NCBI RefSeq assembly: GCF_902459465.1
Contig: NC_047073.1
Span: 2,604,001-2,668,000, forward strand
Length of the DNA: 64,000 bases
Origin: Asterias rubens
Lineage: Eukaryota
Direction of reading: 5' to 3'
Position 1 is the first letter of the stretch, and each line of letters starts with the position of its first letter. The notes under the pieces are model-generated. The model was given only the letters and a program-made list of their open reading frames with translations. It did no database searches and was not told the DNA's origin. The translations under genes were made by a program, and so were the position numbers. Positions 17,947 through 59,600 of the stretch are shown one piece after another.

Positions 17947-18609
17947 ATGACCGAGCAAGTCGAACAAAAACCACGGCGGAAAACCTCGGTGTATACGGCA
18001 CCGATGGATATAGCCACCGGGCTTCCACCGGGCCACGACCACGGAGAAACCCGCTCCCGTAAGGTGTCCTTTGGTAGCACCGGCAGGCCCAGGAACGTCT
18101 CGGTGGGGAGCATGGATGGTGATTATCGGACCCGTAAGCAGAGCTTCGGCAATGACCAGGACTACCGCAACCGGAAAATATCCTTCTCTCGCCGCGTGCT
18201 CTCCGTGGACGAACGGGGTTGGGGTACGGACGGCTCGGCGACTGGCCGGGGGACAACTCGACCGAACACCTACAAGATGGACCCAGAGAGGCCATTCAGA
18301 GAGAAACCGGTCAAACAAGTCATCGAGAATGTTCTTCAGGACTTGGAGAAGGTCAGGTACGATAGCCCGGTCTTGATGGCCGCGAAGGCGCGAAACATCA
18401 GCGATTCTGTCAAGCAGCGAGTGAAACTTCTCGGGTTCGACCGCTACAAACTCGTCTGTGTCGTCTGCTTGGGACAGAAGAGCGGTCAGGAAGTGCAAGA
18501 CGTGGGGAGATGTCTGTGGGATTCGGCAAAGGATGGTTTTGTGTCCGTCGTGTATGAGAACCCAACTCTGTTTGCTGTGGTTAGTCTTTATGCCGTTTAC
18601 CAAGAGTAA
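17947..18609 (+). CDS. Tctex1 domain-containing dynein light chain (TCTEX1D1/DYNLT5-like), 220 aa, intronless CDS
   Basis: The C-terminal ~115 aa show the Tctex-1 pattern: NTYKMDPERPF...YDSP...ISDSVKQRVKLLGFDRYKLVCVVCLGQKSGQEVQDVGRCLWD..KDGFVSVVYENPTLFAVVSLYAVYQE*. The first in-frame ATG is at 17947 (atcATGa); the ORF-track start at 17845 is TTG. There is an acceptor-like ttttttggcag upstream near 17764 and an AATAAA at 18870. Confidence 0.9.
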   Translation: MTEQVEQKPRRKTSVYTAPMDIATGLPPGHDHGETRSRKVSFGSTGRPRNVSVGSMDGDYRTRKQSFGNDQDYRNRKISFSRRVLSVDERGWGTDGSATGRGTTRPNTYKMDPERPFREKPVKQVIENVLQDLEKVRYDSPVLMAAKARNISDSVKQRVKLLGFDRYKLVCVVCLGQKSGQEVQDVGRCLWDSAKDGFVSVVYENPTLFAVVSLYAVYQE

Positions 18610-24800: not shown

Positions 24801-27800
24801 AATGTCACCGAAGGAGCTTGACTGTAGTTACCTTCAGTTGGCTGTTGCATTTCAGGAAGTTGCTGTTGCATATCGGGGACTTGCGTTTGAGGAATTCCCT
24901 GCCAAGGAAAAAACAAAGTATGATAACAATGCATTGATAGAGCACCTCATGCAAGCCTGATAGTGCTGACCAGTAAAACAATAGGTAAAAGCATAATATA
25001 ATTTAAGTGAAACGGGCAAATATAAGGCAAAAAGCATATAGTTATGTAATCAACACACTAACAATACCTAACAAACATTATCCATAAATTAAGCTACATG
25101 AATACCAAGACAAAAATACAAAACGCCAAAAGGGATAAAAAGGATAAATCGATAACAAAAGAGTGGAGAGGTCACATTCAAAACTTGAGGTCTCGAAATC
25201 AAGCATCTGAAAGCACACAGCTTTGGGTGACAAATGTGTTTCTTTCTTCCATAGTTATCTCTCAACTTCGACTGCCAATTTAGCTGAAATTTTCACGGGT
25301 TGGGTTATTTTATGCATAAGTTGAGATACACCGCGTGATAATAATTAATTGAATGTTCCATTCAACTCGGCACCGCCTTGTTGAGTAGAACATTCCATCT
25401 TTCAACTCGTGAACACATTCGCACCATTGCACTCATAAACATTCATTCTTTGTATACTGACTTACCGTCAGTAGGTACTCCATCGCTCGGTCAGGGTTGT
25501 TGAAGCTGGCATGGAGGGCAGCCTCCACCTTGTGTCTCTCGTATCCCAAAAGCACGATTTGTTCCACCATCGATTTGTATTCGTCACCGGTAACCAGCAT
25601 CGACTCTGCTGTATTCACTGAAGCCATGGGCTCATCACTGGTAGTCGTCATTGTGGTAGAAGAGGAACTTTAAGAAATAGAAAAAGTCAAGAATTATAAT
25701 TGATGCAAAGATGCAAAGACAGAGGGCTTTTTTGTCTAGCCTCCTGCCGTGGCCTTCATGGCTATCCCTATCAACTCAAAGGGGAGACCACTTGACGAGT
25801 CAAGGGCCATTTTTTAAACATGCATTATTCATTACTTGTTTCCAAAGTGTCAAACGATACCAATCACAACGCAGACATGCTCAAAAACGTTTTATAAACA
25901 AATCAAAGGTTGATGATTGTTTTTTTTCCCAGGCAGTGTGCATAATTTGTTCTTGTATGCTGACCCCAGTTGTTTCTAAAAACACAAGAAATCGCAATCA
26001 GGTTGAAAAAGGCTGTGACACTCCCTGCGTGGCCTCCCATTTCAAGTCGCTTCGGATATCGGCGGTCTGAAGCTGTCCCAGCCACGAAGGCCTCAACAAA
26101 TGGCTAGGCTTTGGTAAGGAACACAAGTTCCACTACACAAATGCCAGAATTCATCAAATCTTAGCCATCTCTGACATCAAAACTTTTAATATCGGAGATC
26201 AGCAAGATTGTTTTGATATCATCTGCAGAGTTTATTTATTTTTTATTAATTTTTTTGTTATGCAAGTTCCCCAAAACAAGGCTAAAAGCCACTCTAGGTT
26301 AAGGGCTACAAGGAAGAAAACTCAGTGGAGCTGAAGTTACGAATTGATATTAAAAGATGGAAGATCATAGGATGAAAGGAAACATGCACTAGGCAAGGAG
26401 TTCCAAATAGATGCAGTACGAGGGAAAAAGCTACTGGAGTAGCTCTTTGTTAGGCCCCCAACTGTCTGTGCATCAAAGTCTGTGTGAACCAAATATGAAC
26501 CGAAGCCAAACTGAGAAATCAAAGGGCCAGATATACACACCTTGTGGTAGTGGCTGGTGCATTATCTTTCTTTTCCTCTGGAGGTTTCTCTGTGGGTTTT
26601 GTTTCTGTTGCTGTGGTGGGTGAGGGGGTTGAGGCAGGGGCTGCAGCGCATGTCTCTGGCTTCGCAGGTTCTGCGGACTTGGCTGCTGCCTTCGGCTGGA
26701 AAGAGAATTGGTAATGATGAAAAGAGCCAAAACATGTCAACGGGGGTGAACATTTTAAAACAGAATTTTTTGAATTTCAATGCCCAAGTGAACTTTATTT
26801 GATATTGGCAACTTCCTTTCTGATAAAATAACATAAAAAATGGTTTATACTTGATAACATTGTGAGAAACTGCTTTCTCTGAAGTAACGTAGTTTTTGAG
26901 AAGTTATTTCTCACTAAATATTTGAATTGATTTCGAGACCTCAGTTGTGGTCTCGAATTCAAGCACTTGAAAACAAACAATTTGTGCGACAAGGGTGTTT
27001 ATTCTTCAATTACTTTCTTCCAACTTCGACTACCAATTGATTTCATACTTTTACAGGTTTGTTATTTTATGCATCGGTTGAGATACACCAGAAGACTTGT
27101 CTTTGACAACTAGCAAAGGTGTCCAGTGCCTTTAAGTTGACCGTACTTACCTTTGTCAGCATTACCACAACGAAACTCTTGTCATCAATCTTGTACTCAC
27201 TGATTGGATTGTCATCATTCAGGATTTTACCTGCAGGCAAAAATAGAATTTTAAAAACATTGTAGTTCTGTTTATATTTGGTTTGCGGTAACACCATGTG
27301 TGTATCTACTTGCCAGGTAGAGTTTGTTCTTAAAGAACAGTCTTTCTTTATTCTACTACCGCGGAGTAGATTTATCGGGTGTTCGGGAGACTTCGGGAGA
27401 CTTCTCAGTTCTGAAAAGAACTGTCCTGCTTTTTAACTATTACCCGGGCAGAAGGTATAGAAAATTGGCTTGGACTACTACTTTAGCTTAAAATTAGATT
27501 GTAATTAACTGTACTACCGCGGAGTCAGTTCTTGAATTGGTCTCAACGTTTCGACAAGCTTGCTCTAGTCATCGTCAGAGACTGACTGGTTTGTAGTTTT
27601 GGTTTGTTTTTCATTCGCCCAATGGACAAGTTAGCAACAAGTTTGAGTTGCCCACAATTTCACTGGCCGACATTAAAAAATGCACATGATTGTTTAAGTT
27701 TGCAGAAGATTTAACTTTTACGCAATCTTATCCCCTTATTTCTGCCCTTAATTACAAACTTGACAAATAAACTCTTGTTGGGAATTTACCAACAAAGGCC

Positions 27801-31638: not shown

Positions 31639-34600
31639 CTAGAAATCAGCATCCAGAGTGAAGACATGCCTCGAGTCGTCTTCAGTCATCACATGAGCCC
31701 GTTGGTATTCAGAAACTCTCTTCTCAAAGAAATTTGACTTCCCTTCCAGAGAGATGTTCTCCATGAAGTCAAACGGATTTGCGGTTTTGAACATCTACCA
31801 GAAATCAAGACAGAAAGAGCACAAGCGATGTTAGTGACACAAACCATTTGTAGGAATTGACAAAAGACTAAAGAGGCTTCATTTGCATTGAAAACATTTT
31901 CCACGACAACTTACAATGAAATTCTACGGTCGCTGTAACTAAGAACTCTCATAACCCTACTCGCGTTGAATGAAGATGTATGTAATATGATTTAACAGTA
32001 GATGTTTCAGCCTCACTAAAGTTTTTGAGAAAAACAGTAAAAAATCACAGAGCAATGTTTCCTGTTGTACTTGCTAAATTTTTTGTGTAATACCATACTT
32101 ATTTCATAACAAATGCTTTCACAGCACAAAGCGCCCCATTCTACAGGTCTCTTAACGAGTGAGCGCACATAGGGTGTCATGGCCGAGTTGAATTGAATTT
32201 TAAGTTCCGGTGTTTAAGTGTGGGTTCGAATCCCGGTCATGACATTTGTGTCCCTTAGGAAGATACTTTACTATAATTGCTTCTCTTCACCAAGGGGGGT
32301 ACCTGCGAGGGTATAGGTTGATATTGTGTATGAAAAAGCCACTGGCCGTCACAACGCTCTGGGCTGTATACTCCCAGGGAGCTGAGAAAGACTAAAGGAA
32401 TGTTATTGGCCCAATGACAAGAGCACTACTGAAGCGCATTGAGACGGTTATTGTGAAACGCCTAATAAAAACTATGGTTATTATTAGTATTATTATGACA
32501 TTTACCTTGCTGCAGCCGAGCTCTGTGAGAAGCCTATCTGCAACGAACTCAATGTACTCCATCATCAGCTGAGCATTCATCCCGATCAATCTCAGCGGCA
32601 AGGCTTCCTTGAAGAAGTCCTTCTCGATGCCTACAGCCTCCACGATGATCTCTTCGATTCTAGCTTCCCGTGGTTTGTGGACCAGGTAGGTGAAGAGGTG
32701 GCTGGCGAACTCGCAGTGGAGGCCTTCGTCACGGCTGATGAGCTCATTGGAGAACGTCAGCCCCGGCATCAGACCCCTTGAAAAAAATGCGTAAAGTTGT
32801 TTTAAACATTTCATAGAGTCATGTAAAAAAAAAGGTAATGGTCCGACAGTTCGCCCCCCGCAGAGTTTTCTTGAAGGCTTAAAGGCAGTGGACACTATTG
32901 GTAATTGTCAAAGACTAGCCTTCACAGTTGGTGTATCTCAACATATGCATAAAATAACTAACCTGTGAAAATTTGAGCTCAATCGATCATCGAAGTTGCA
33001 AGATAATAATGAAAGAAAAAACACCCTTGTCACATGAAGTTGTGTGCGTTTAGATGCTTGATTTCGAGACCTCAAGTTCTAAATCTGAGGTCTTAAAATC
33101 AAATTCGTGGAAAATAACTTCTTTCTCAAAAACTATGGCACTTCAGAGTGAGCCGTTTCTCACAATGTTTTATACCATCAACCTCTCCCCATTACTCTAC
33201 ACCAAGAAAGGTTTTATGCTAATAATTATTTTGAGTAATTACCAAAAGTGTCCACTGCCTTAAAGGACACGCAACAAACAGGAATAGGTAACTTAGTTTT
33301 GGGCTTACCTCTTTTTCAACCAGAAGATGGCAGCAAACGACCCAGAGAAAAATATCCCCTCAACCGCTGTAAAGGCCACAAGTCTCTCTCCAAAAGAAGC
33401 TTCCCTCGACTGAATCCATTTCAGAGCCCACTCTGCCTTCTTCTTGATGCATGGCACTGTCAAAATCAATTGAAAAAAGTTATCATTTGGGAAGCAATCA
33501 TCTTTACTAGCAGCTGAGAAGCTGAATAGCGAAAGACACAACTGTTTAAACAGAAGGCACGCAAGGGTGCCTTAGGCAGTCTGTCCCATCAAACGCACCA
33601 TGAACACAGAGCCTGGCCAGAGATCGAAGAAAACCGGAGCACCTGGAGAAAAACCATCGCACAACTTTGGTCACATATAATTTCCTTAGCCGAGATTCAA
33701 ACCAGGACCACATTGGGGAGAGCTGATCGGTTTACGCTCAAGCAACCTATACCACCTAGTTAGTAGTGGATAGTCTTATATTAAAATCTCGTCACGCGTG
33801 GGGTGACAGGTCTTTTTCTTCAGCCGCCCCACGCATCTGGAACTCTCTACCACTTAATCTTCCATCTCGTCTTTGTACCGCAAAATTCAAGTCTCTTCTC
33901 AAAACTTGTCTTATGTCACAGGTTTTCAATGACGAATTTTGTTGTGTCTGTTTTTCTTTGTGTTGTGTTTTGTTTTTGGTTTTACTGCGCCTTGAACACC
34001 CAGCAGGGTGGATATGTGTGCATTACAAGTGTTATTATTATTATTATTATTATTAAAATACAGGACATTCACGTCAATACAGTGCACCCTCTACTGTTAG
34101 CAAAGGCGAGGCCACTTTCATTGTATCACAGGCAAAAGGAATCTTTACACGAACACATCGCAATGCAGTTGTTTGTTCCGCGGATTGCATGCAGACAAAG
34201 CAGCAAGTTCACAGTTTCCTCTTGTTTACAGCTTTGTTTTTAAAAAAACTTTTATTTTATTCAGAATTTAAGTCTGTGATGGCACTACATGATATCTTTC
34301 TCAAGACGGTTTTATCTACAAAAGACTCACTTGTTTCTATAGCGTTGAACAAGCGCATCTTCTCAGAATGGTCCTGTATGTAACTGTCGATGAGCAAACT
34401 ATACATCTCAGAGTGAATGTTCTGTAAACAAACAAACAAAAGAAATAAACAACAAAGCAATCAGCATGGCACTACATCATGGTCAAATAATATTCATAAA
34501 TACCCCAGACAGTTTTGCTTTTCCTATTGGTGGAGAACATGTCACATGGGGGTGTTTAAACGGCTGATAAAGACATAGCTGGAGCTGTTTAAGACCAGCT

Positions 34601-37600
34601 GGCTTCATATACGCTGATTTATCTACACAGAATGCAATGTAATATGTGCATAAAAACAACCAAGCGCGCACAAAACTGAATTTAAAAAAGTTTTTGAAAA
34701 TGTACAAACTCTGAAACTTCGATAAAGAAACAGATTGTCAAAGATTGTCTATGGTTGTAATATTTGTTTAGCTTTTTATGGCCATTTATGAATGGGAATA
34801 AAACAGAAGTGACTCAATCTTAAAAGGCCTTTTAAAACATTGCAGGGTCAGGGCCTTAATCCAACAGCCCAACCTGCCGTTTTTTAACGACCAACCAAAA
34901 AAATCCCGTAATAATAATAATAATTTGAGCTGAATTGCGAAGGACGCGACTACGTGTTCGAAAAGCAGGCATGCAAGGGCGCCTTCAGCTGCCAGCCACA
35001 TCAACCCATTATGACCACTGAGCACAGCCAAGATCAAAAGTGTTTGATTTTTCCCGAGGGAGGAAAACCGGATAGTCTGGAAAACCCTTGTGGCACAGCA
35101 GAGAACCAACGCACAACTCAACTGACATATGGCCCTGGCCGGGAGGCGAGCGCTTTACGCACAAGCCAACCGTGCCACCCAATAATAATAATAACATTCC
35201 CTTAATAATATAACCATGCAGTTCTCTATCTTAAAATACTAATAGAAGGTTGTGTTTACTTGCCTCCATTGCCATTTGGAAGCCATAAAAACATCTGGCT
35301 TCAGGTATCTGCACTTCTTGGCTGAACCTTTCAGCAAGGTTCTCATTGACGATGCCGTCACTTGCTGCAAAGAAGGCAAGGATGTGCTTGATGAAGTGCT
35401 GCTCCGAAGGCTGAAAACAAACAACATTACTTCTTAGAAGTTAGAATCCTAAAGCCAGGTTCGTACTTCCTGCGAAATGTGATACAATTTTGGACGTCAC
35501 AAATTCACAACAAATAATTCTGAACTGTGTTCAACTGCTGCGAAACATGGGCTGCGAAAATAGCCCTGTGACTTCGCATCACATTCGCAGAGTATGAACT
35601 GGGCTTTAATATGCCTGCATCATACTTTAAAGGGTTTGGGTACTTTTTGTGCGACACCAACCACAATGTCCACAGATTTACATTAAACTCATATAGTTTA
35701 AAGATAATGATAGTAAAAAGCTTCCCTTAGAATATTACTTGCTGAGGTGCTGTAGTTTTTGATAAATGAGTAAAACAATGTCACAAAAATAATTTTTTAT
35801 TTTTTATTTTTTTATTTTTTTCTCGAGTTGATTGAAACCAACGGTTCTTTTCAGAACCACCCCAACTCACTAGAGATAGTCATTACATGGTGTTACCGCA
35901 AACCTTTCTATATTGTATTTCCATCATGCAAAGTTTCAAATCCTCTTTAAAAATAATTTTAAAAGTAAAACTATTTGGGCATTTACAAGGTGCGACTCTC
36001 CTGAAAACATTGCTCTGTGATTTTCACAAACTTGACGGCTAATGACGCTGAAACTTCTACAGGTAAATTATATTGAATACATCTTCATTCCCCATGAATA
36101 GGTAGTCCCAAAGTTGTAACAAACAATCCGTTCAAGTTGCAATATCCTCAACTCTTGCGAAACATTCATTGTGAAATAGTCAATGAAAATTATGTGCTCG
36201 TCAAATTCACTTCTTTTGCACTCAAAAAAATATTTGTAAAAAATTGCAGCATTCCTTAAAGGAATCCTTAGTTTCAAAATAACAAAAACAAGAATCACTC
36301 TAAAAAATCACTCCCACGCTCAGGCTCTAGGGGACAAAGGAACACATAGCCTACCCCCTACTCAACAGAAAAAAAGCAGAAGAAGAAAAAAAAAAAGGTT
36401 TTAGCTGATGTCTGAACTGAAACAAAATATAAAATTTAATGGGAATACCTTAAGACTCCTCCAGTGTTCCGTGTCCTTTCCAAGATCTACTTCCTCACAT
36501 GTCCAAAAAGAGGCTGCAAAATAAAAACCTCACACAATAAGTGTTATTAATTCCTACATTTTGAAACAGGGATCTAATAAGTTTAAACCAAAAGTGTCTT
36601 CGGAAAGAGACCCTCCTGAATCCATCAAAATACTCCACTCTATGGTAACTCGACACCAAAGTGTTAGGAATCTGAAGAAACAAAATGTTGACTTGCACTC
36701 ATTGCCACACCCAACAAAGTCAGACACCTTCCTGAATACAATTTTGGAGGTTTGGGAGCTGTAAGGATTCAAGATTTTCTTCTTAGGTTTTTTTCTGGAG
36801 TGTCGTGGCTTAGCGGTTAAGAACATCGCACTCAAGCTCTGGTGTTTCTGATCAGCAGAGTGTGGGTTCGAATCCCGGTCGTGACTAAAATGACACGTAG
36901 GTCCTAAGGGGAGCATTGAACTATAATGCTTCGTCCTTTGGATGGGATGAAAGTCGATGGTTCTGTGTATTGTGTAACGCACGTAACAGAACATGGTGTT
37001 CCTGGTTTGATTGTCAGCTTATTGTGCCACAGCACCTCATAAACCATTCCATCAAAACCATTAATTGAAACGTAGTCCCACTTACCATGAGTATAATACT
37101 GAATGTGCACTTAGAATCAACTGCCTAATAATTGTTGTTTATTATTATTATTATTATTATTACGTTTTTTTGAGTAGATTTTTATATCAAATTCGAACCT
37201 TTGATTGACTTGACACAATGAAGCCACATTTGCGGAAAGAGCATTATTGTTACCTATCGGAAATTCAATTAATAGAAGACTAACCCTGAGCTTTCTTGTA
37301 GAACTTCCAAATTTCAGGGTACTGGATCGGCAAAATGACAAAACGTTTCGGGTTGGGTCTGAGAAGTGGTTCATCCTTGTCTGAATGAGATTTCCTGTCG
37401 ACATCTTTTGAAAGATTTTCTTCTGTATTCACTTCTTTGAGTTTGTCTGTGGGTTCATCCGAGGTCGTACGAGGAGTCGATTTCGACTGATTTCTCGAGG
37501 AGAGACTTTCTGTTTTTGACGAGGTCCTGAGGAGTTGACGCTCATCTTCCTCCTGAATGTATGACATCTGAGAGAGTAAAGGACTATCTTCCTCGTCACT

Positions 37601-45665: not shown

Positions 45666-48600
45666 ATGGTATGGCAATTTCATTCCTCATGCCACGGCAC
45701 AAATATCAGAGTTGGTGCCTCAGGCACGAAAGCTAGCCGCAGTCCAGACACTTACGATAATGGAATTGTATTCAGTGAAACCCCAATCCAAACCGATGAG
45801 ATAATCTCGTTGTTCTTCGAAAAGACAGCGTCTCGATGGACCGGTGTGCCGCGGATTGGATTCACCAACCAAAATCCAGACCAGCGGGATCCAAAGTCAC
45901 TCCCGCAAATTTATACTGAAGAGTTATCGTATAAAGACAAAACATGGGCGATGCCCTTAGCGAAGCAAGGGGATGAAAACATCTTTGTAGATTATGAGTT
46001 TGATCACAATGGTGTCGTTTGTGTGAGGCAGCTGGGCCAAGTTGAGAAGCTCGCTGATTGTAAAGGAGCGGTGGATTTTAAGAAACCTGTGTGGGTCACA
46101 CTGGACTTATGTGGTTGCTACGGTGATGTATTTAACAATGGTAATTTGTTTGTTTGTTTATAAATTTTCACTCAATAGGAGATTTTTGAGCAATGGTGGT
46201 AGCAGACAAAACAGCTCTGAGCGCGCGCACGCGCATATTCAGGATTGCACATGTAGGTCTGACTCTGAGCATGCGCAAGACTGTGAAAAAGCACCGTCTA
46301 AAAGTCTCCCATTATGTTTGAAATCATTGTTTTCGAAGTCATTTAATTTTTAAAATCTTTGACAATTTTCACCAACGAAGTTCTGAAATCATGCATTTCT
46401 GATGTTTAAAAAAAAATCATTACAACCTTAGGATGAGAGAAAAATCAATATTCCTCATTGGGATTTGAACTCGAGACCCCTGACTCAGAGCACTCTCGGA
46501 CACTCTGATTGGCTGCATATTACGCCACAGCACCTCGTTCATAATGTCTCAAAGCGCCTTGAGCGTCACTGAGTGACGGATATGAGCGCCATATAAGACG
46601 CCACTTTTATTATTGTTAATATTATTATTACTGGTACAATGTAACATCACTGTCTGTACATAAAATATTAGGCCTATAAAATAACTAAAGACTAAATTCT
46701 GTTAATAATTTGTATTCAGATACCTGCAGGTACACACCCTACGAAATCGCTGCGCAGGGATCAGATGCCCAGAAGGTGTATCGAACAGCATTAAGGAGTG
46801 GGAGTAAGACGGTGCGACGGACTGAGTTGATGGTGGTCGGCCAAGAAGGGGTTGGAAAGACGAGTCTGATCAAGTTACTCACAGGGCAAAAGTTAGTCTT
46901 GGTGCAAGATGTACTTGTTAAGGTGGTAGCTAGAGGCAGTTTGAATCTTATATTTTAGCAGCGAGTACGGTAACAATTTAATATCCTTCTGAAAAATATT
47001 TTAACAGGTATGATCGGAAGGAAACCAGTACCAAAGGAATGCCTTCATATGCAGCTAAGATTGATAATCCATGGACTTCCTGGCCTATCTGTGCTGGTTA
47101 TAAAGGTATTTGTAAAGCCCGGTTCATAATTCCTGCGAATGCGAAGTGAATGTTGAAGTCAGAAATTCGCAACAAATAATTCGTAGGGGTTAAACTGTGC
47201 TCAACTCACTTGCAAATATTGCTGCGAAAGATGAGAGTAGGTTTGGGTACTTTTTGTATGACACCAAACACACTGTCCTCAGGTTTACATTAACTAACAC
47301 GGTTTGAACATAGTGATGGGTGAAAGCTTTCATTAAAATATTATTTGATAAGGTGCTGTGTTTTTTTTTGAGAAATGATTAACAATGTGTCACAAAAATA
47401 TATTTTTTTCTATTTTAGCATGTACAGCGTATTACTAACCAGTACATTTACTAGTATTTGTACGAGAATCTACTATCAACATCGCTCTGTCATTTTCACT
47501 TTTTTTACTAAAAAACTTCAACATGTAAACTACATTACAAACATCATCATTTACAGTGATTAGGGATTCATGTCATGGCCAAAAAACTGGATCTACAAAA
47601 GGTATCAAAACCTTTTAATGGCTCACAACAATTTCATTTGATTTTTTTCCAGAGATATCTGAAACAAACTCTGACAATGATGCCATCGGACTAAACATCA
47701 AGGAAATATCTGGCCATGATCGATTCTTCTTAGCCAGCCAGGTATGAAGCCATTTTATTTTTATCAATAGAACCTTCTCCTGCAACGGCACAGCCCAGTT
47801 TTTGCCGATCGTTGTTTGAAAACTATGGAAAGCCATAAATGCCATACAGAAACAGAAAGCCACAGTTTGTAACAGTATTACGCAAATTGTCGGGAACAAA
47901 ACAACCAATCATGGAAGGTGTTTTATTTAATTAACCATTTTGCAGAAAATGTTGAGCTTAAGAACACAAGCGTCACGACTAGAACTCGAACCCACACTCA
48001 GCTGATCAGAAACACCAGAGTTTGAATTCAGTGCTCTTAATCGCTCCGTCACGTCACTTCTTGAACTAGGTCCAAACATTTTTTATGCAAGGATCTATAT
48101 CAAAAGACACTAAAGGGTTAGCGTCACCATAGTAGTTTGAAAGTTAATCTGAAGTACTTTTAAAACTATATTAGGTTATTTTAATCACAGCATTCCACGT
48201 TTAATCATATTTTGTTTTTTGTTTTAAATACCATCAGCTCGTCCCCTTGAACGCAGAAATCATCCTGTTGGTTTTCAATCTGATGCATGATTTAGACAAA
48301 CGACCCAATGAATCAGATGAAAAGGTAAGGCTAGTTTGGTAGGATTTGAACATTTGCTTGGTGGAAATGCATAGTAAAGATTTGCGGTAACACCATGTAA
48401 TGACTATCTCTAAATGAGTTGTGGTGGTTCTGAAACGACCCGTTGGTTTCAACTAGACGTTTCGATCAGTATGCTCTGATCATCTTCTGGAGAAAAAGTC
48501 TTGTATTACTGGAATGTTTGTGCAACAATTTTTTTTTTCTTTAACTATTTTCATGCAACTTCGATGACCAGTTGAGCTAAAATTTTCACAGATTTGTAAT

Positions 48601-51600
48601 CTTATGCATAAGATGGGATAAACCAAGTGAGAGTACTGGTCTTTGACAATAACCAAAGGTGTCCAGGGGTCGACTTGGGTTAGGACTATTCCCAGGAGAT
48701 TATAAGTTAGGACAAAGTAACTTGTCCTAACTCGAGATAGGACTATGTCTTAACTCTTTGTGAAATCCAGTGTCCACCCCAGTACAGTAAACAGCTGTTG
48801 TGAATAATTTGTTTTTCAGAGTCCGTATGATGATCTTACCACGTTAGAATTGTTGGATTTCTGGATGCGTACAGTCACAAAGAGCCTGCCCTCAACGCCA
48901 TCAACAGGGAAGAAATCACCCCGGATCATTGTAATCGGTAGCCATAGAAATAGCCTGGGGGAAAATGAGATTGAACGTCAGTCACTTGTGAGTTATAAAC
49001 CAGCTTGAAAACACAATGAGCAAGTTCGAGTGCGCACATTTAGTCAACGTAAATGCGCAGGGACGCACTCACTCGTTAGTCAACCATCGGTACCATGGTA
49101 TTCAACACTCCATTGCCTTCTGCGTTTTCGCTACAGTGTCACTGGTTCCCCTCTGTGCTTTACAAATGTTAGCATGGAACAGGCTGTCAGGACAACTGAA
49201 GAAACCATAGGCTCGTGGCTGGTTCCAAATTGTCGACCGCAGTAGTCAATCAATGGTCAACCAGCCTGGATTTGAGTCAAAATAGTCAACCTTCAGTTAA
49301 CCATGGTACACACTTGAACCTCACAACTCTTTAAACAGTTACAGCTACTAACATATCAAATCTGGAATCACAAACAGCATGTACAAGAGTCCCTTATCGC
49401 GGATGGCCGGACGGACGGACAGACGCCAGACGGAAATTCGTATTATAGGCTCGCACTGCTCTGCAGCTAGCCAAAAATTAAGCATCTTTGACTGAAACAA
49501 AGCTCAAGTGTATGTTTGAAGATCAGGTCCCAATTTCATGGCTTTGTCTACTCTAAGCAAATAATTTGCGCTTACAGGAGCAGGGAATTCCACTCTTATG
49601 CAAACATATTTCACAGGTTACCAGGTAATATTTTGCTTCTGTGCTTGTGTAATCCACGTTACTAGGCATTCTTAACTTACTTGGCACAGATATTTGGCAC
49701 TAGCGCGTAAGCGGAGAACGGTCATCGTAGGCGTAGAGTTCGGCAGTAAGCAGAGCCATGAAATTGGGCCCGGTGCCAGGTCACAAACCCTCCCCCCAGA
49801 AACTCTATTACAAAGCTCTCTGTTCTTTAACAGGTTGAAAAGAAGTTTGCAAGAATCAAGACAGTCGTTAATGAGGCTCCATATCGCCACCATGTTGTAA
49901 CTCGATACTTTGCCGTTGAGAGCAGTGTGGAAGATTTTAATAACACTGAGGTATTATAACAATCATAACTAGTTTTTATATAGCGCATTTCACAATAATT
50001 TCTCACTGCGCTTTACATAAGTGCCCTGGTCATTGGGCCATTAACATTCCGGTGTTCCTGGTTTGATTGACAGCTTATTGCGCCTCAGCACCTTGTAAAC
50101 CATTACTCGGTGCTATAGAGGAATAGGTCTCATACTTTAAAAACTTAGCTCCACAATACCTCGCAGGAAAAATACTGAACGTTTTGATACACCAACCCAG
50201 TACTATTATTATCTTTTACAGATTACAGCACTGAGGCAGTCTGTCTGGGATTTACTGAAGTCGGATCAGCTTGTTGGGCAGGAAATTCCTCTGAAATGGT
50301 TACCGTTTGATGAAGTGCGACATGCCAGTCGGCCAATCCTGTCCCTGGCAGTGGTAAATACTAATAGATAATAATAACTAGTTGGTATATAAGCCCAATT
50401 TATAGTGACTGTATCAATGCGCTTTACAATAGTGCCCAGCAGCTGATTTCACGAAACGCTAGGATTAATCCTATCTGGAGTTAGGACTAGTAACTCGTCT
50501 TAACTTTAGATGTGTTAAATCCGTCCTAGCGTCTCGGATACGGAACTTAACTCGTCCTAAGTTTCTAAGATTAATCCCAAGTAAGGAAGAGTTTGGTGAA
50601 ATCGACGGCTGGTCATTTGGGCCAATAACCATACCTTTAATCTTTCTCAACTCCCTGGGGAGTTTACAGCCCTGGGCTGCCATGATGCTCCAAAGGCTTT
50701 TTCATACAAAATACCAACCTCTACCCTCGCAGGTACCAATTTATACGCCTGGGTGAAGAGAAGTAATCATAGTAAAGTATCTTTCTCAAGGACGCAAGTT
50801 TTACGACCGAGATTTGAACCCACACTCAACGATGATGACTTAACCCCAAGAACTTGAAATTGATGATCTACTAAACCACTCGGCCATGACACCCTATGTG
50901 CTAGAAAAACATTCCAACGAATTAGTTTATTTCACCACTCTTCAAGCTGCCATTATTTAAGAAATTATTTTGTTGATGCCCTGAAGCAAGTCGAAGGGGC
51001 ATAATAGTGATTGCCGTGTCCTTCTGTGTGTGTGTGTGTGCAATTATTGTCCAGGAGATTACTCTAGAAGGACTTGGCAAGTTTATGTATGGATTGGGGG
51101 CTTGGGATCCCCAGAAGCATATTGTTGGAGAGTTTTAAAGGCACTGAGCTCAATTGATAAGTACTCAATTAATGATTAGCATGAAAACAATTTGTTTAAG
51201 CAATAGAGAGCTGTTGATAGTATAAAACATTGTGAGAAACAGGTCCCTCTGAAGTACCGTAGTTTTTGAGAAGGAGGTAATTTCTAACTCAAATATTAAA
51301 AGACGTCAGGCATGAAGCCTTTTATTAGGCATGTGAAAGCAAAGGTGTCTAGTACCTTCAAAAATCAAGTTCAGTATGGATAAAACAAAACAATTTTTTT
51401 TTCAAGCGATAGCTTAGCACACATTCTTGTTTGTTGTTGCAGTTGAGAGCAGCCTCAGGGAATTCGTTCACGGACATGACAGAAGCAGAATTCAAGCTAA
51501 TGCTACAGCTCAATCGAGACCGGGGTCACATTTACTTCCAACCTAACAATGTTGAGACGGCTTTGAGTGGTGTCATTTTTATGGATCTCAATTGGTTGAT

Positions 51601-54600
51601 TGAAGTACTCATGAGATTTGTAGATGTTTCAAAGCCAACGGAACAGGTGAGAATTTTAATTAACTGAGATTGTTATTTGTATTTAAACCCATACACCGAT
51701 GTATTTCACAGATTACCAAGAACATGAGCCAGCCAGCTTGCGCATTCACCATTGATTTGCATTGTTTATGTCATTCATTTTCATACAGTAAGCACCAGAA
51801 GGTTAGCATGTTTTTTTCGTGTGCTTACGGTTAGCAGCGCTATGAAATGGAAACTCAGACAGTAAGCACAAAAGTGGCTGTTAAGCAGCTCTATGAAGTT
51901 AGGCTCTGATTTCTTAACCACTCGGTCAGTGCAAATTGTGTGTTTTGGCAGCATTTAATAATTGCGAACAGATTACTGTTCCGGTTTCTGCCATACACCA
52001 TATAGCATATGGCTTTCAGAGTCCTTTAGCAAGAATTTAAAACTCTAGTTCCGCCCCCAGGCATTCCAGAGATGATGTCTTTACTACTAGACCACAGATG
52101 ATGTATCTTATCTTTTTTAGTCGCCAGCTCTTTTGAAATCTTGGAAGAGATTGACAGAAGAAGGTATAATGGAGGAATGTCTGATTAACCACGTCTTGAG
52201 AGATAAACTCAGTGAGGGGCAAGAAGGGACCACTGACTCCACCCGGGATGCAAAACAAGCTGTCATAGACCTGTTGTGTCACTTAGACATGATGTGTCCA
52301 CAACATCCACAACCAAATCAGGTTAGTAATGCATACACTGATATATTGTGGTGATATGTGGTGATATGTGGTATGCAATAACTGAGACATCGTGGTGATA
52401 TGTGATAAACAGTAACTGAGACATCAGGGTGATATGTGATGTAAAGTTACTGTTCACACTTTGAAAAGTCATATCCTGCAGACAACCTTTTTTTACTATC
52501 CTTCAATTCATACAAGGTGTCAGAAGTTGAAACTCGAAATCAAATTTCTACAAAAATAGAAATGTGTGGACCATTGTGAATCACCAAAACTTCACGCTAA
52601 AAATTTTGTTTTGAATGTGCTGCATGTGAAGTGGGGACTTGTATTTTTGAAGATTGACTGTTCATTCCGTTACTATTTCAGGGAAGAGAAAATGAGAAAC
52701 TGGCGAGGCAGGGAACCAGTGAGCATTCATATTTCACGCATTTACACCTCAGCCCTACTAGATCTAACAAGATGGACACCAATGATCCTTCGTCGTCTCA
52801 TGTCTTCTATATTGACTTCATGCATTTCTTGCCCGGTATGTGACCCACTAGCGTTTAGCCAATAGACCAATCAATAAAGCCACTGCCAGATGTACTGACT
52901 AACCACAGCTGAGACTGCAAACATGAAAAAGCATTCTTACAAACCTAAACACTATTATTTGGCACTGTATACTCAGTGCCTCCCGGGTTCTGCAGGGAAA
53001 AGTATCCACAGGCATTCTATATTCGGGTGGGATTTGAACCCATGGCCCCTGCCATTCCATGACAGTTGTCTTACCACTAAACAATAAAAATAATATTAGC
53101 AGGCATTTATAGGTCGCTCTTACACAGGGTACCACAGCACTTTACCTGTGAAACTATACAATAAGCAAACAAATAAGGGCACTAATAATGGGAAAACAGT
53201 TTTGTCTTTGCAGTCAACCATTGAACAGGAAAGTTTTAAGACGTTTCTTGAAAACTTCAAGGGACTACTGGAAACGAATTTGATGAGAGAGACGGTTCCA
53301 ATAGCAACTGAGCTTTATAGGGGACACAGAGTGAATCCAGTTGGAAACCCAAGACAATTATTCCAGGCAGTTGCTCAAACCTCTTGTGCTTAAACATGTT
53401 AAAACATCAGAAGCATCCTCTTGCACATTCGTTAAAAAGATGAAATTTGGGTTATTTTATTGTTTTATGTTTTATTTGGGATTTCTACGGACATATATAT
53501 TTGTTTATATAGAGATGACATTTTGTTATCCATGCACAAAGCTATACTACAGAAGTTCAAAATTGTTTACTTGTATTTTGTTTTCCATAGAGGGTATTTT
53601 TCGTCGTATTGTGGTGCGAGTTCTTCGATGGACACAGCAAAAGGGAGATGAAGAACCAAGACTAATCCATAAAGGGATAAGTTTCTTCTTCGATGTTGAT
53701 CATGAAGTCCAAATTAAGATGTCATCTCTCAAGATGGCTTACATCAAAGTGAGTTTATTTGATAGGACGTAGGACTAGCCGTCAGTTTGTAATAACTCCT
53801 AAAGAGTCTTAGGACTAATCTTAAAGACTCTGGACACCTTTGGTAATTGTCAAAGACCAGTCTTCTCACTTGGTGTATCTCAACATATGCACAAAATAAC
53901 ACACCTGTGAAAATATGAACTCAATTGGTCGTCAAAGTTGCGAGATAATCATGGAAGAATTTTTTTTCTTGTCACATGAAGTTGTGTGCTTTCAAATGCT
54001 TGATTTCGGGACCTCAAAATCTAATTCTGAGGTCTCGAAATCTAATTCAAATATTTTAATGGAAAATTACTTCTTTCTCAAAAACTTCATTACTTCAGAG
54101 GGAGCCGTTTCTCACAATGATTTATACTATCAACAGCTCTCCATTGCTAGTTACCAAGTAAGTTTTTATGCCAACAATTATTTTGAGTTATTATCAATAG
54201 TGTCCAGTGCCTTTAAGTTAAGACTATCTTTGTGAAGTTGACCCCAAGCGTTTTGTTATGTCAAACCTGCTGGAGGGGCCTAAACACAAAATTTGTCTTG
54301 TTTGTATCAGGTGTGCATTAGAAAACCAGCTGTCGTGAAAACATCCAAGCGACAATCATCACATCAAATTGAAAAAGAATCTGCACCATCAAGTGTCATC
54401 ACACGCAAGGTAGGACAGAGTTTATCAACTGTATATAACCTTGCTGGGCCCAATTTCATAGAGCTGCTAAGCACAACAATTTGCTTAGAATTAAGTTTCT
54501 TCCTTGATAAAAACACTATTAACCAACCATATTTCCTTGTGATTTTCAGGATTAAGCAAACAACAACTGTATACCAGTAACAAGCAATATGTAGCAAAAG

Positions 54601-56604
54601 TAAATTTGGTTTGTAATCCTGTTTTTATCAAGGAAGAAATCTCATGCTAAGCGCATTTTTGTGATTAGCTGCGCTATGAAAGTGAGCCCTGATCAAACGG
54701 ACAGAGATGAGCAGACACAGCACTAATAATTATAATTAAAAAAATAACCAGTTTTTATATAGTGCTTTTCATATTGGACAGCAGTGCTTTCCCAAACAGA
54801 CAACGTCTTTGCAAATAATACAGCAAATGAACAAAATAGAAATTCACAGGAAGCAACCAATGAAAAAGATATTCTTAAAGTGCTTTCTTGAAAATAGGCA
54901 GCGAATTTGAGGTGCGTATGGTGATGGGGAGGTTGTTCCACAGTCCAGGAGCGGCTAAAGAAAAGGATTTATAGGCAGCAGATAGGATAGATTTGCTGAT
55001 TGGTTTATTTTAAGCAGGACGGGTGTTGTCTGATGCTGAGCAAAGAAGAGCTCTAGTCTGACTGTAAAGACTAACTCATGATGCAATTGGAAATAATAAT
55101 AGTAACAATAATAACTGGTTTTTATATAGCACTATATCACACCTGAAGGGCGTCTCAAAGCACTTCCAACATTATTACCCCTGGTCACTGGGCCTTAATT
55201 CATTTCTTAAACCATCTCAGCTCCCTTGGAGTATACAGCCTGTGCAACAATTAATGTACTACTTGGCTAAATCAATTACAATCATCTGGGTGGAGAGAAG
55301 CAATTATAGTGAAGTGTCTTGCTCAGGGACACAAGTGTCACGACCGGGATGCAAAACCAACCCTCTGCTGAACAGAAGCACTAGAGCTTTATTAAAATAA
55401 TTATTGGAAGTTCTCATTTGGTTTCATCCTCCCAAAGGTTAAAGACTTCCTCAGCGATATGTTGAATCCCGAGAAGTGCCCCTGGCTCCACGGCTTCCAT
55501 TTTTGTTTCTGCGTAAAGTGCCCTTGCAATGAAGAGGGCGCTCTTCACTTCCTGTCCATCGACGATTGTCTGGAAAAACAGCGGATACGGTGTCCGAGGC
55601 AACCAGATGTGAGGATTGATCCATCTGGGTTCAAGGAGATGTTTGATGACTCGGATTCTCAGCCTTCTCCCATTTGTGGTAAGTGTACTCATAAAGGCAC
55701 TGGACACTATTGAATATTACTCAAAATAATTTTTGGCATAAAAGTTACTTTTTAACGTGCAATGGAGAGCTGTTGATTGTATAAAACATTGTCATAAACA
55801 GCTCCCTCTGAAGAAACAGAGTTTTTGAGAAAGAGGTATAATTTCTCACTCGAATATTCAAAGACTTAAGGCCTGAAGCCTTTTTTGGGGGTATCTAAAT
55901 GGTGTTTTTTCTTTCATTATTCTCTTGAAACTTTGCTGACTTAATTGAGTCCAATTTTTTTAAAGATTTGATATTTTATGCATATTTTCTGTTGAGATTC
56001 ACTAAATGAGAATACTGGTCTTTGAGAATTATAAATGGTGGCCAGTTCCTGTAAGCTGATCTCTTTGTAAACTGTAGCGATCAATGGTCAATACAAAGTG
56101 TATTATACGTTAAAGAACAATACATTACAGTACAGTACAGTGGGTCACTTGGGGCTGGCCCTGGGTGCATGACGAGAGGGTGAGTGATCGTTCGATTAGC
56201 TCTTGTCAGGGGCTCACCCGTAAGTGAGCACCTCTGGGTCGACCCAGGGAAGCTAATCGAGTGCACCCTTGTAAAGACTGAAAGCACACATTTCATGTTT
56301 TGTTTTAATGTTGTTGTCTGTGCCAGATGATCATGTGATGAGTGAGAAACATCTGAGGCAAGTCGCCAAGAAGCTTGGTCCAGAATGGGAACAAGTAGCT
56401 GTGTTACTCGGCTTCAAGACTGCTGATCTCTATCGCTTTAAGAAAGATAACTATGGAACGGACGGCCAGATCTTCGGCATGTTGGTGGCATGGTCACATC
56501 AGGAAGGGGGAGATTTGAGACAGAAGGCCAAGAACCTTGGAGAGGCTCTGGGGGAGTGTGGACGCAAGGACGTGAAGGAGGAATTGGTCGATCCATATGT
56601 GTGA
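45666..56604 (+). CDS. ROCO-family protein: Neuralized (NHR) domain - Roc GTPase - COR - Cys/His-rich segment - Death domain, about 890 aa
   Basis: Exons: 45666-46140, 46720-46891, 47008-47105, 47653-47741, 48238-48324, 48820-48987, 49834-49950, 50222-50353, 51443-51646, 52121-52321, 52682-52835, 53591-53748, 54311-54409, 55438-55678, 56327-56604. All GT-AG, phases consistent, 2673 nt. NHR: FHSSCHGTNI..NGIVFSETPI..WTGVPRIGFTNQNP. P-loop: LMVVGQEGVGKTSL. Roc: IILLVFNL, LDFWM, RIIVIGSH, FAVES. COR: GQEIPLKWL, DLNWLIEV, FLPEGIFRRIVVR. Death: LRQVAKKLGPEWEQVAVLLGF..QIFGMLVAW..LGEALGECGRKDVKEEL. Confidence 0.88.
50600..50895 (-). mobile_element. tRNA-derived SINE, truncated
   Basis: Family body plus ATTTGAACCCACAC...CGGCCATGACACC head. 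Confidence 0.7.
53821..54216 (+). mobile_element. Near-complete T2/Kolobok-type MITE
   Basis: ttaaAGACTCTGGACACC...GTGTCCAGTGCCTttaa. Confidence 0.8.
55095..55390 (-). mobile_element. tRNA-derived SINE, decayed
   Basis: (AAT)n tail and ATTATTACCCCTGGTCA...AGTGTCTTGCTCAGGGACA body shared with 43003-43386. Confidence 0.7.
55691..56045. mobile_element. Degenerate T2/Kolobok-type MITE
   Basis: taaAGGCACTGGACACTATTG left end with a family body; the right end is decayed. Confidence 0.6.
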
Positions 56605-59600
56605 ATATAAAGCAGTTTTAAAGGGTTTAAAGGGTAAATAAAGCAACTGTAACAACACATGGTCCTTGGGTGATACTCTTTTGTTTCTCACTTTGTGAAT
56701 ACGAACATTGCTCTGTGATTTTCACGTTTTTTTTTTACTAAGAAGCTGAAACTTCTTCAGGTAAATTATAATACATACATCTTCATTCACAGTGAGTGGG
56801 GAATCATGTCATGCCGAAAAAAATTGATATACAAAAGTTATCAAAACCCTTTAAAGGGAGTTGTTTACGGAGATAATTGGAACCCACCGGTTGTTTTCAA
56901 TCCTGCATAGCTGTAGATATATCCATTAAACAAACCAGCGAAATTTCATTTTAAAAGGTGTTAGCGTTTTTGAGATATTGCCGAAGTCTAGTGCGGTTTT
57001 GTTCACGTAGGAAAAATAATCTGCAATTGGAATACACAATCTGAATCATAATAGTATAAAAAGTGGAGTTATTTGAATGAGAGATAAGTCAATTTATAGT
57101 GCATTTGGGTAGTTTCAAAGATATGCTTATATAATGACCTAGTGCAAGGACCTAGTGTTTTATTATTATCTATAAGGCCCCGATCTTTGACATTAGTAGT
57201 TTTTGGTCTTTAACATTTTATGTTAATGCGGTCTTGCTGTATTCATATTATTCCATATTATATAACCACTCCAGAAGTTTAATGTAAAACCAGTGGCATC
57301 ACTAAGGGCGTCCCACCCCGACCCCCATCTATTTTAACTTGGGGTGGGAATACAGAGTAACATGTTTCATTTTATAAACTTTAATGTAATGATTTTGATG
57401 TTTTTAAAACTGTTTCCATGTATATGTATAACATGTATTTTATTTTTAAGATACAGTAGACTACATAAAAAATGGCACTGGAAATGGGCCTGTTTAAGGA
57501 AAATGCAAACGGAAACTTTGCCAGAAGTGCCCCCATAGAGAAAAGAAATTGTGCACCCTTTGTGCTCCCCTTAAATTTTACCCTAGATACTGTGTGCTGT
57601 GTAAAACATATTCTCTTCAAAGTAATGTTTAGTTTAACTCTTTAACTTTAATATACAAAGTGCAATTTCTTCCTGAAATAATATTTTACATCTCTTTTAA
57701 AAATCAGTGTTGTCCACAGTTTTAATCATAATCTACGTATTTGTGTGTTATCCCAGTGTGTTTAAAAGGAGATTGCACGCCAAATCAGTGAATGGTTCTT
57801 TTATAAGTTGAACGAGTTCCGAGTACTAATTCCTTGTGTGTTCATTTTTCTTTGAATTGATAGATGTCAATAAATAGAACCAATGAGTGCGTTCTGAATT
57901 AACATTTTTTGTTTTTCTTTGCTTTATATACCACGCTGCAAGCAGCATTTGGAAAACTTAAAAGGCCTAAGTGTTTTTGTGTCCCACTCACAGAACAAGC
58001 GCTTATAATGATGAATTTATCTTCAAGCAAAATTAATTTCCAGTTGATCGTTCCCTCCCTCGTCCCTTTTTTGAGGCAGCAACATTTGTTTTCAAAAAGA
58101 CACATTTTCGGTGTATTTCTTATTAAACTAACTAATCTTTTAAGAACTTGTAACTACATAAAGTATAATAAGTGGTGACTTAAACTAAAGAATTGGTGGC
58201 CAGTAACATGCGCTTGGCGGTCACTTTGAAAAAAAAGAAAGAAAAAAAAATGGCCCTCATCCTTCGATCCTCCTCTTTTGGGAAAACCAGGGCGATCAAC
58301 TGGTATTTTTGTTTACTTCGCCTTAATTGGCATTTAACTTGTACCATACCAAATACATATTTCTGTGATTGTTAAACAACAATTTTTACAATAAATGCAA
58401 CAGGTGTTTTTTTCGCAGCTCAGAACAGATATTAAATAATTAATTTGCGAAAGTCCCGAGGCTACACGCGCCCGCCGAAGTCAACAAAGTTTGTGTCAAA
58501 ATTCTTGACCCGTGAACTACTAACAATAGAGTTTTGTTCACTTATTACATCGTTGAAAGTCGAAGCGCAACACTACAGTTATTGTCCGTTTTTCACCTCC
58601 TGCCCACGGTGTTTATGTTATAGCTTAATTGTTTTGTAAACAAACTTCCGGCTCTGTGTGCTGGCGCTGTACCGCACTGCAACCCACTCCGCATGTGGAT
58701 GGTACCCAAACGCCACAGCATACATTTTACACATGTAGATGAAATCGGTACCAGGCTCTCGCACGTTATATGATGCGTACCGTATATTAATCAGTAGGAT
58801 TGATGTAATGTATAAACAGAGTCGATCAAATTTATCACTACATTTTGAGGCGGATTTTCAACCTTTTTAGTCACTGCCTGGATGCGTGGAGTGGATGATT
58901 AACAGGTAAGAGATTCATTATTATTTTCAGTGGAGAGATCGGATTTATTATATTCGGGATTGGCATTTAAACAAACGCCAATTCAGTACAAGTTCGATGT
59001 CCCCGTTCAATGCGTAATTCATGGGCTTCGCCGTTCACAGTGTGCGGCAGGTCCGTGTGGTTGGTAGACTACCTCCCCGGGTTCGTTGACTGAATACATT
59101 TTCGGACATCTTACCAACTCGACCTTTTGTTAAGCTACATCAAATCACGGTGATCAAGAGGCCTTGTGGTCTGGAAATGTTGCTTTTACTAAAGAAAATA
59201 TCCAAAGACCGACCGACTCTTTATTGTTTTGATCATCATCATGCCGACGACGTCAATGATGAGATGAGAATAAACTGTTAGTGTTGTTGATGTCATTATA
59301 TAGTCAAAAAGATAGACAGTGCAATCAAAGTCAAACAATGTGTTTCGAAATATAGAAAGGGTTGCGGTAACACCATGTAATGACTATCTCTCATGAGTTT
59401 CGAAATGAAAGTTGATTGATTTGAATTGAAATAAATCATATGATTATTTGATTTAGGCCTATATAATTAATAATGACAAATAAATTTGTTTCACATCACA
59501 AGCAATTGATTTAGTTTCGAAGAGCCAATATCACTAGGCCCTTTAATCTTATTTTTAGACAGCGCAGTATCACCACACACCTACTTACACTTTACAGTAA

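Follow-up and report, generated by a model that had tools for sequence, protein, structure and literature searches.

A TIR-less paralog of an uncharacterised NHR–Roc–COR–Death–TIR protein family in Asterias rubens

A 64,000-nucleotide (nt) stretch of the Asterias rubens genome (assembly GCF_902459465.1, contig NC_047073.1, positions 2,604,001 to 2,668,000 of the forward strand; hereafter the window, with positions counted from its first letter) carries, at 45666–56604 on the + strand, a gene for a ROCO protein in which a Neuralized homology repeat (NHR), a Roc GTPase domain, a COR domain and a Death domain follow one another. Our analysis revealed that this gene is a TIR-less variant of a catalogued, uncharacterised family with the domain order NHR–Roc–COR–Death–TIR and a C-terminal CaaX box, and not a free-standing invention; it arose by whole-gene duplication within that family. 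Taken as a whole, the explanation that we favor, with a little better than even confidence, is that the gene encodes a functional, expressed, cytosolic ROCO adaptor in Death-domain signalling and represents a derived paralog of the TIR-bearing proteins.

To rebuild the gene model independently, we translated the + strand from 45,000 to 57,500 in three frames and paired GT donors with AG acceptors such that the frame was kept. The resulting coding sequence (CDS) of 2,673 nt is distributed over 15 exons, all introns being GT-AG, and comprises 890 codons with a single terminal stop. The model agrees exactly with the 15-exon, in-frame, 890-amino-acid (aa) protein put forward in the original prediction, which had been made from the letters of the window alone. 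That prediction had further claimed that kinase, leucine-rich repeat (LRR) and ankyrin regions are absent, and this is correct: the CDS opens with the NHR, and we found no kinase or ankyrin (ANK) match in the gene using Pfam and a comparison of the open reading frames (ORFs) of the window. The features of the gene are listed below with the evidence for each, where X1, X2, X3 and X16 denote RNA-type runs.

45606..45665, + strand: 5' untranslated region (UTR) part of the first coding exon (acceptor AG at 45604-45605; in-frame TAA at 45651-45653; X1 and X2 contigs end their match at 45604/45605).
45666..46140, + strand: exon 1 (CDS), ATG and NHR/Neuralized, aa 1-158, ending in phase 1 (Pfam PF07177, E 2.1e-24; X2 and X3 contigs join it to 46719/20).
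46720..46891, + strand: exon 2, linker and Roc G1 P-loop (GQEGVGKTS, aa 199), ending in phase 2 (both junctions in RNA contigs).
47008..47105, + strand: exon 3, Roc switch I/G2 (ETSTKGM, aa 221; RNA contigs X1, X2 and X3).
47653..47741, + strand: exon 4, Roc G3 region (IKEISGH; family IWDF(A/T)GQ; RNA contigs X2 and X3).
48238..48324, + strand: exon 5, Roc beta-strand (IILLVFNL; alignment, RNA contigs).
48820..48987, + strand: exon 6, Roc G4 region (IGSHRNS, aa 346; alignment, RNA contigs).
49834..49950, + strand: exon 7, Roc G5 region (FAVES; alignment, RNA contigs).
50222..50353, + strand: exon 8, end of Roc and start of COR-A (IPLKWLPF, aa 424; alignment, RNA contigs).
51443..51646, + strand: exon 9, COR-A (collinear with the family COR-A; intron position and phase in common with the A. 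rubens paralog).
52121..52321, + strand: exon 10, COR-A (family alignment; intron shared with the paralog).
52682..52835, + strand: exon 11, COR linker and start of COR-B (FYIDFMHFLP; family alignment, intron shared with the paralog).
53591..53748, + strand: exon 12, COR-B (tblastn E 1e-8 to 1e-10 versus family members; paralog introns).
54311..54409, + strand: exon 13, COR-B loop of 33 aa (frame and GT-AG sites; both flanking intron positions in common with the paralog).
55438..55678, + strand: exon 14, Cys-rich end of COR-B (VKCPC...LHFLSIDDCL; family alignment, paralog introns).
56327..56604, + strand: exon 15, Death domain (aa ~812-890) with the TGA stop at 56602-56604 (Pfam PF00531, E 2.4e-11; exon and 3' UTR in RNA-type runs X16, X1, X3 and X2).
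56605..56800, + strand: presumed 3' UTR of ~190 nt with AATAAA at 56637 (from the length of the X2 contig past exon 8).

An exhaustive HMMER profile search with the NHR exon returned a sole full-length ROCO match, namely P0046, which is 1,270 aa long, comes from Asterias rubens itself, is annotated as "uncharacterized protein LOC117297937" and has its NHR at residues 2-151. Using P0046 as the query, we recovered an orthologous series of proteins (1,140-1,302 aa) from at least seven echinoderms (the asteroids Asterias, Patiria and Acanthaster, the ophiuroid Amphiura, and the echinoids Diadema, Lytechinus and Strongylocentrotus) and three molluscs (Haliotis, Argonauta and Mya). In every member of the series the domain order is Neuralized, Roc, COR-A, Death and TIR_2, and all are annotated as "uncharacterized". 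Likewise, an in-silico immunome of Aplysia lists LOC101861518 as a MyD88-like protein that includes a ROCO domain, for which the legend of Fig. 6 names NHR, ROC, COR, Death and TIR (PMC9334734); going by that legend, the Aplysia protein probably belongs to the same family. We found no functional work on the family in the literature. The novelty claimed in the original prediction therefore stands insofar as no characterised protein with this domain order came to light, whereas the order itself, together with a TIR domain, is already present in RefSeq and in the Aplysia study. In Strongylocentrotus purpuratus, both isoforms of LOC755988 (P0156 and P0157, ~1,140 aa) break inside the TIR domain and continue into an unrelated tail, which could reflect either an error of the model or a natural TIR-truncated isoform.

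Three further features characterise the family. (i) The C-termini of P0046, P0151-P0155 and P0158-P0160 read ...(V/T)(T/N)KC-x-(V/I)C-x-(I/M/V)L, i.e., a CaaX box in which X is Leu, with a second Cys before it. This ending predicts geranylgeranylation and hence a lipid-anchored ROCO/TIR protein; we found no mention of it in the literature searched. (ii) The Roc domain contains an acidic insert of ~160-180 aa between G2 and G3 (P0046 residues ~232-420, encoded at the A. rubens paralog locus, L003, by exons 12789-12919, 16539-16834 and 24082-24330), which is probably coiled or disordered. (iii) In G4, which in ROCO proteins reads TH-x-D, the position that confers guanine specificity (residue ~521 of P0046) varies between D, N, K and A, although the orthologs are highly conserved elsewhere, and this variability suggests, at the level of sequence, that nucleotide recognition is unusual family-wide.

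The domains of the window protein were assigned partly by profile and partly through this family. Pfam was run on single exons, and under these conditions exon 1 matched Neuralized/NHR (PF07177, E 2.1e-24), with Drosophila Neuralized NHR1 as the nearest solved structure (2YUE/4KG0, E 3e-13), and exon 15 matched Death (PF00531, E 2.4e-11), a profile match that assigns it to the Death-domain superfamily; its nearest solved relatives are the Death domains of CRADD (8e-7), PIDD (2e-5) and RIPK1 (3e-5). Single exons are too short for the Roc and COR models: Roc remained below threshold on the P-loop exon alone (E 0.016), and COR gave no Pfam match on any single exon. However, the spliced protein aligned to the NHR–Roc–COR–Death–TIR proteins, which carry PF08477 (Roc) and PF16095 (COR-A), with 217-364 bits, the match being split into two collinear segments (residues 4-229 and ~253-790/855). 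This alignment placed the NHR at 5-158, the P-loop at 199, G2 at 221, G3 at 264, G4 at 346, the start of COR-A at 424, the COR-B region at ~620-797 and the Death domain at ~812-890. The P-loop, the G2 Thr and the G4/G5 equivalents align with those of family members that match PF08477, and COR follows Roc by family homology, residues ~425-594 aligning to the PF16095 segment of P0046 and residues ~620-797 to its COR-B. Thus, of the four domain calls that had been expected, NHR and Death were obtained directly from Pfam, and Roc and COR only via homology to the family.

To determine how the window gene is related to the family, we retrieved the genomic locus of P0046 in A. rubens and assigned exact positions to its 20 coding exons. 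All 14 introns of the window gene match introns of the P0046 gene in order and phase: 12 lie within 0-3 alignment columns of a P0046 intron of the same phase, and the remaining two have the same phase and fall in gapped stretches. More specifically, the phase series of the window gene (1,2,1,0,0,0,0,0,0,0,1,0,0,1) recurs in order in that of the P0046 gene, the latter having one additional phase-0 intron, at the Roc-insert exon. This match in intron order and phase demonstrates that the window gene is a whole-gene paralog and that the fusion of NHR and Roc is older than the duplication. What the P0046 gene has in addition are the Roc-insert exon, two introns in or just after Death, and the exons that encode TIR and the CaaX end. 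Correspondingly, the G2-to-G3 distance is 43 aa in the window protein versus 206 aa in P0046, so that the ~160-aa Roc insert has been lost, and the window protein stops directly after Death, lacking the TIR domain of the family as well as its CxxL end. We detected no TIR-like ORF piece or TIR relic anywhere in the window, nor any tandem paralog in it.

Sequence identity to P0046 differs by region, being 34% for NHR (36% in the HMMER match), 41% for G1/G2, 30% for the rest of Roc, 26% for COR-A, 29% for COR-B and 25% for Death. In a maximum-likelihood tree, the terminal branch of the window protein measures 2.9 substitutions per site versus a median of 0.29, i.e., it is about ten times longer, and owing to this long branch the tree fixes neither a position relative to the echinoderm/mollusc split nor an age for the duplication. 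The Death domain of the window protein is encoded by a single exon, with its acceptor at the homologous intron and with two introns fewer than in P0046. It gives only a short and weak match to the Death domain of P0046, and the nearest solved relatives of the two differ (CRADD/PIDD/RIPK1 for the window protein versus NRADD/p75NTR for P0046). The exon may be either the diverged original after 3' intron loss or a replacement exon. No close full-length relative of the window protein was found, either by the exhaustive HMMER search with the NHR exon or by word-indexed searches with P0046 and with the exon-translation alignment; the closest matches to the NHR exon are exon-sized fragments, namely P0001, with 84% identity, from a contig of GCA_014845345.1 that is 1.5 kb long, and P0006, with 44%, from a metagenome contig of 664 bp.

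We assessed the splicing of the 5' half of the gene by aligning contigs and reads from four RNA-type runs to positions 45,000-50,999 (exons 1-8). A 2,959-nt contig of run X2 matched at 45605-46139, 46719-46891, 47008-47103, 47651-47738, 48235-48322, 48818-48987, 49834-49948 and 50220-50353, and its pieces adjoin without intervening letters, so that exons 1-8 are all joined at the predicted sites; offsets of 1-3 bases between contig and model coordinates occur only where the same letters fit both sides of a joint. Consistently, a 640-nt contig of run X3, from a different study, contains the same 46139/46719 joint and the next three (to exon 5), and contigs of run X1 support E2-E3-(E4)-E5 and E6-E7-E8. 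The joint between NHR and P-loop (46140/46720), which the original prediction had singled out for confirmation, is thus present in transcript contigs of two studies.

The same data define both ends of the protein. At the point where the X1 and X2 contigs break (45604/45605), the genome reads ...tgcag/agac, an acceptor, and the 5' end of the X2 contig carries 33 extra letters beyond 45605; accordingly, at least 33 nt of a further non-coding exon lie upstream of the first coding exon. Between this acceptor and the ATG, an in-frame TAA (45651-45653) stands 12 nt upstream of the ATG in the same exon, and therefore the NHR is the true N-terminus, with nothing coding before it. Past exon 8, the X2 contig continues for 1,527 nt, of which predicted exons 9-15 need 1,335 nt, leaving ~190 nt for the 3' UTR and hence no room for further domains such as TIR exons in this transcript. 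The Death exon with its 3' flank is present in the same RNA-type runs (X16, X1, X3 and X2), and the gene is transcribed in at least three studies. In the runs labelled organism B (X2, X3 and X12), ~2-8% of exonic positions differ from the window, with up to 11 differences in 134 nt (exon 8); organism B may represent a sister species or else a strongly diverged haplotype.

The ORF is intact across all 15 exons, and comparisons of coding sequences indicate that the gene is under purifying selection, with a ratio of non-synonymous to synonymous substitution rates (dN/dS) of about 0.2. The NHR exon and its copy in GCA_014845345.1 are 84% identical at the protein level, with dS 0.43, dN 0.09 and dN/dS 0.21, and both acceptor and donor are kept. 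Similarly, 28 of the 41 differences between the window and the organism-B transcript were listed, comprising 16 synonymous and 12 non-synonymous changes (ratio ~0.25). Set against the long branch, a dN/dS of ~0.2 indicates that the gene has evolved fast over the long term but is now constrained.

Roc-COR tandems are dimeric nucleotide-dependent switches, and Death domains form helical homotypic assemblies. By analogy, the window protein may act as a nucleotide-switched adaptor in Death-domain signalling, a proposal to which we assign about even chances. In such an adaptor, COR would keep two chains together while the nucleotide state of Roc sets the conformation, as in other ROCO proteins; the N-terminal NHR, a concanavalin-like, SPRY-related peptide-binding module, would bring in a partner or ligand with a short linear motif; and the C-terminal Death domain would join or nucleate a helical assembly of the CRADD/PIDD/RIPK1 kind, which would connect to caspase or kinase signalling in cell death or innate immunity. 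As the window protein has neither TIR nor lipid anchor, it can neither function at TIR receptors nor give a TIR output; its place would instead be downstream of or next to the TIR-bearing paralog, or it would modulate this paralog, probably in a pathway related to that of this sister protein. The sensor–switch–effector arrangement suggested in the original prediction is, by the same analogy, a reasonable reading, and the TIR domain of the sister family is in line with an immune module. ROCO cores (AP-GTPase plus COR) with variable N-terminal sensors and C-terminal effectors have been described as conflict and immunity modules, and SPRY-like domains including the Neuralized repeat are listed among immune recognition modules (PMC8195603). 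NHR domains are known to bind short motifs of their partners, as in the contact of Neuralized NHR1 with Delta and those of NEURL4 with Dll1, HERC2 and the ROC domain of LRRK2 (PMC4565672).

Several observations weigh against the reading of the window protein as a nucleotide-switched adaptor. G1 (GQEGVGKTS) conforms to the canonical motif, as does the switch-I Thr (ETSTKGM), but G3 reads IKEISGH versus IWDF(A/T)GQ in the family, such that the Mg-bridging Asp is replaced by Glu and the Gln at the Ras-Q61 position by His; given these changes in sequence, GTP-dependent switching by the window Roc is not assured. G4 reads SHRN, its specificity residue being Asn, as is the equivalent residue in the A. 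rubens paralog. Compared with canonical small-GTPase motifs (DxxGQ for G3, NKxD/THxD for G4), the window protein thus has E for D, H for Q, and SHRN. COR dimerisation, peptide binding by the NHR and the partners of the Death domain are assumed from other families. The long branch also fits relaxed constraint after duplication, expression in the RNA runs is low, and the junctions from E8 to E15 rest on frame, GT-AG sites and intron positions shared with the paralog, the RNA alignment covering exons 1-8. Finally, the gene sits outside any immune-gene cluster within the window, and its neighbours there look like housekeeping genes.

Of the alternative explanations, one is that the Roc domain no longer cycles, so that the protein would be a pseudo-GTPase scaffold, serving as a constitutive adaptor or being a duplicate that drifts toward loss. 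The altered G3, the SHRN at G4 and the very long branch are what such a scaffold would predict, and we consider it unlikely, though worth retaining, because the P-loop and switch-I Thr are intact, because the Asn at G4 is no sign of decay, the position being variable (D, N, K or A) among the slowly evolving family members too and likewise occupied by Asn in the A. rubens paralog, and because the ORF is maintained over 15 exons at a dN/dS of ~0.2.

TIR-less or truncated adaptor isoforms damp MyD88 signalling, and in a comparable way the window protein could be a decoy or negative regulator of its TIR-bearing paralog, competing through its NHR, COR and Death surfaces for a common ligand, dimer partner or Death-domain assembly while giving no output in the absence of TIR and anchor. 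Precisely the output (TIR) and targeting (CaaX) parts have been lost, with the remainder under purifying selection, as expected of a decoy; on the other hand, an identity of only 25-41% per region makes shared partners and hetero-dimerisation doubtful, and the two Death domains resemble different solved structures (CRADD/PIDD/RIPK1 versus NRADD/p75NTR). On balance, we regard a decoy role as unlikely, to the same degree as the pseudo-GTPase scaffold.

We also considered, as a rather improbable proposition, that the covalent fusion of NHR and Roc is a "Rosetta stone" for the contact between NEURL4 and the ROC domain of LRRK2, in which case the NHR would dock on its own or a partner's Roc and read or set its nucleotide state. 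The NEURL4-LRRK2 contact has been mapped to a region of NEURL4 with NHR3-4 and is sensitive to nucleotide state (PMC4565672). When we compared the window NHR with the six repeats of NEURL4, there was no consistent preference for the LRRK2-binding repeats 3-4, repeats 2 and 5 tending to score best, and hence this idea receives no sequence support. If true, coupling of NHR and Roc would be an old principle by which ROCO proteins are regulated, and the TIR-less copy its minimal natural test module.

A non-immune role in membrane trafficking or in the handling of Notch ligands, as for Neuralized, NEURL4 and the LRRK2-NEURL4-HERC2 complex, is very unlikely: although Notch ligands are among the targets of NHR domains and NEURL4 interacts with the ROC domain of LRRK2 (PMC4565672), the window protein carries neither a RING nor any other ligase portion, and its C-terminal Death domain, together with the TIR of the sister family, is a hallmark of death and immune signalling. 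Lastly, an annotation artefact, i.e., a separate NHR gene and Roc-COR-Death gene wrongly joined or a chimeric transcript assembly, is essentially excluded, as nothing was found in its favour and it arises only via the E8-E15 joints, the RNA alignment having covered exons 1-8, whereas the 46139/46719 joint occurs in independent contigs from two studies and the same NHR/Roc intron, in the same phase, is found in the A. rubens paralog, whose orthologs are annotated with the same domain order.

The favored reading, that of a derived ROCO adaptor, is best delimited by comparison with known systems. With the TIR-bearing family, the window protein shares the N-terminal NHR followed by Roc, COR-A/B and Death, the collinear alignment (217-364 bits) and the correspondence of 14/14 introns; it differs in length (890 versus ~1,270 aa), in lacking TIR_2, the CxxL prenylation motif and the ~160-aa acidic insert, and in its altered G3. 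Since two or three family-defining features (TIR, CaaX, Roc insert) are missing and the gene structure is shared, it is best called a derived paralog. Human DAPK1 (kinase, ankyrin repeats, Roc-COR, Death) resembles it in having the Roc-COR tandem before a C-terminal Death domain, but the window protein has an N-terminal NHR in place of the kinase, calmodulin-binding region and ankyrin repeats, and no specific sequence relationship between the two was shown beyond the ROCO core; as it lacks both kinase and ankyrin repeats, it is no orthologue of DAPK1. As in Neuralized, NEURL1 and NEURL4, its NHR is bona fide, the closest solved structure being Neuralized NHR1; in contrast to them, it has a single NHR, a C-terminal Death domain and no RING or ligase part, and without a RING it is not a Neuralized-type ligase. 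Its layout, in which a recognition module is followed by an NTPase switch or oligomeriser and a death-fold adaptor, is that of NLR/STAND receptors; however, in place of NACHT or NB-ARC it uses a Ras-like Roc with COR as its NTPase, and the protein is not an NLR. As for MyD88-type adaptors, the sister family has Death followed by TIR like MyD88, whereas the window protein has no TIR.

The inputs and outputs of the ROCO Roc-COR switch are still debated, including those of DAPK1 and of the Parkinson's disease protein LRRK2. The present family couples a peptide-binding NHR upstream of Roc-COR to Death domain adaptors, with or without TIR, downstream of it, and has been conserved since before the echinoderm-mollusc split; it therefore offers a compact natural system for how a ROCO switch links recognition to the assembly of death-fold/TIR complexes. 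Comparison of the window copy with its TIR-bearing sister could separate the parts needed for output from those needed for regulation. The window gene is also predicted to add to the lineage-specific diversification of death-domain genes in echinoderm immunity.

The other genes of the window are the following.

17947-18603, + strand: Tctex-1 family protein.
25436-27432, - strand: UBA-containing RAD23-like gene.
32395-37978, - strand: ribonucleotide reductase small chain.
39723-42029, + strand: nitroreductase-family (iodotyrosine-deiodinase-like) gene, the next + strand gene upstream of the ROCO gene, ending near 42,029.

Interspersed repeats lie in introns of the ROCO gene at 47000-47200, 48400-48800, 50400-50800, 53814-54217 and 55688-56060, where the depth of RNA contigs is very high (up to >40,000). 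A repeat element of ~400 bp is likewise found at the A. rubens paralog locus, whose introns contain several copies with 70-83% identity.

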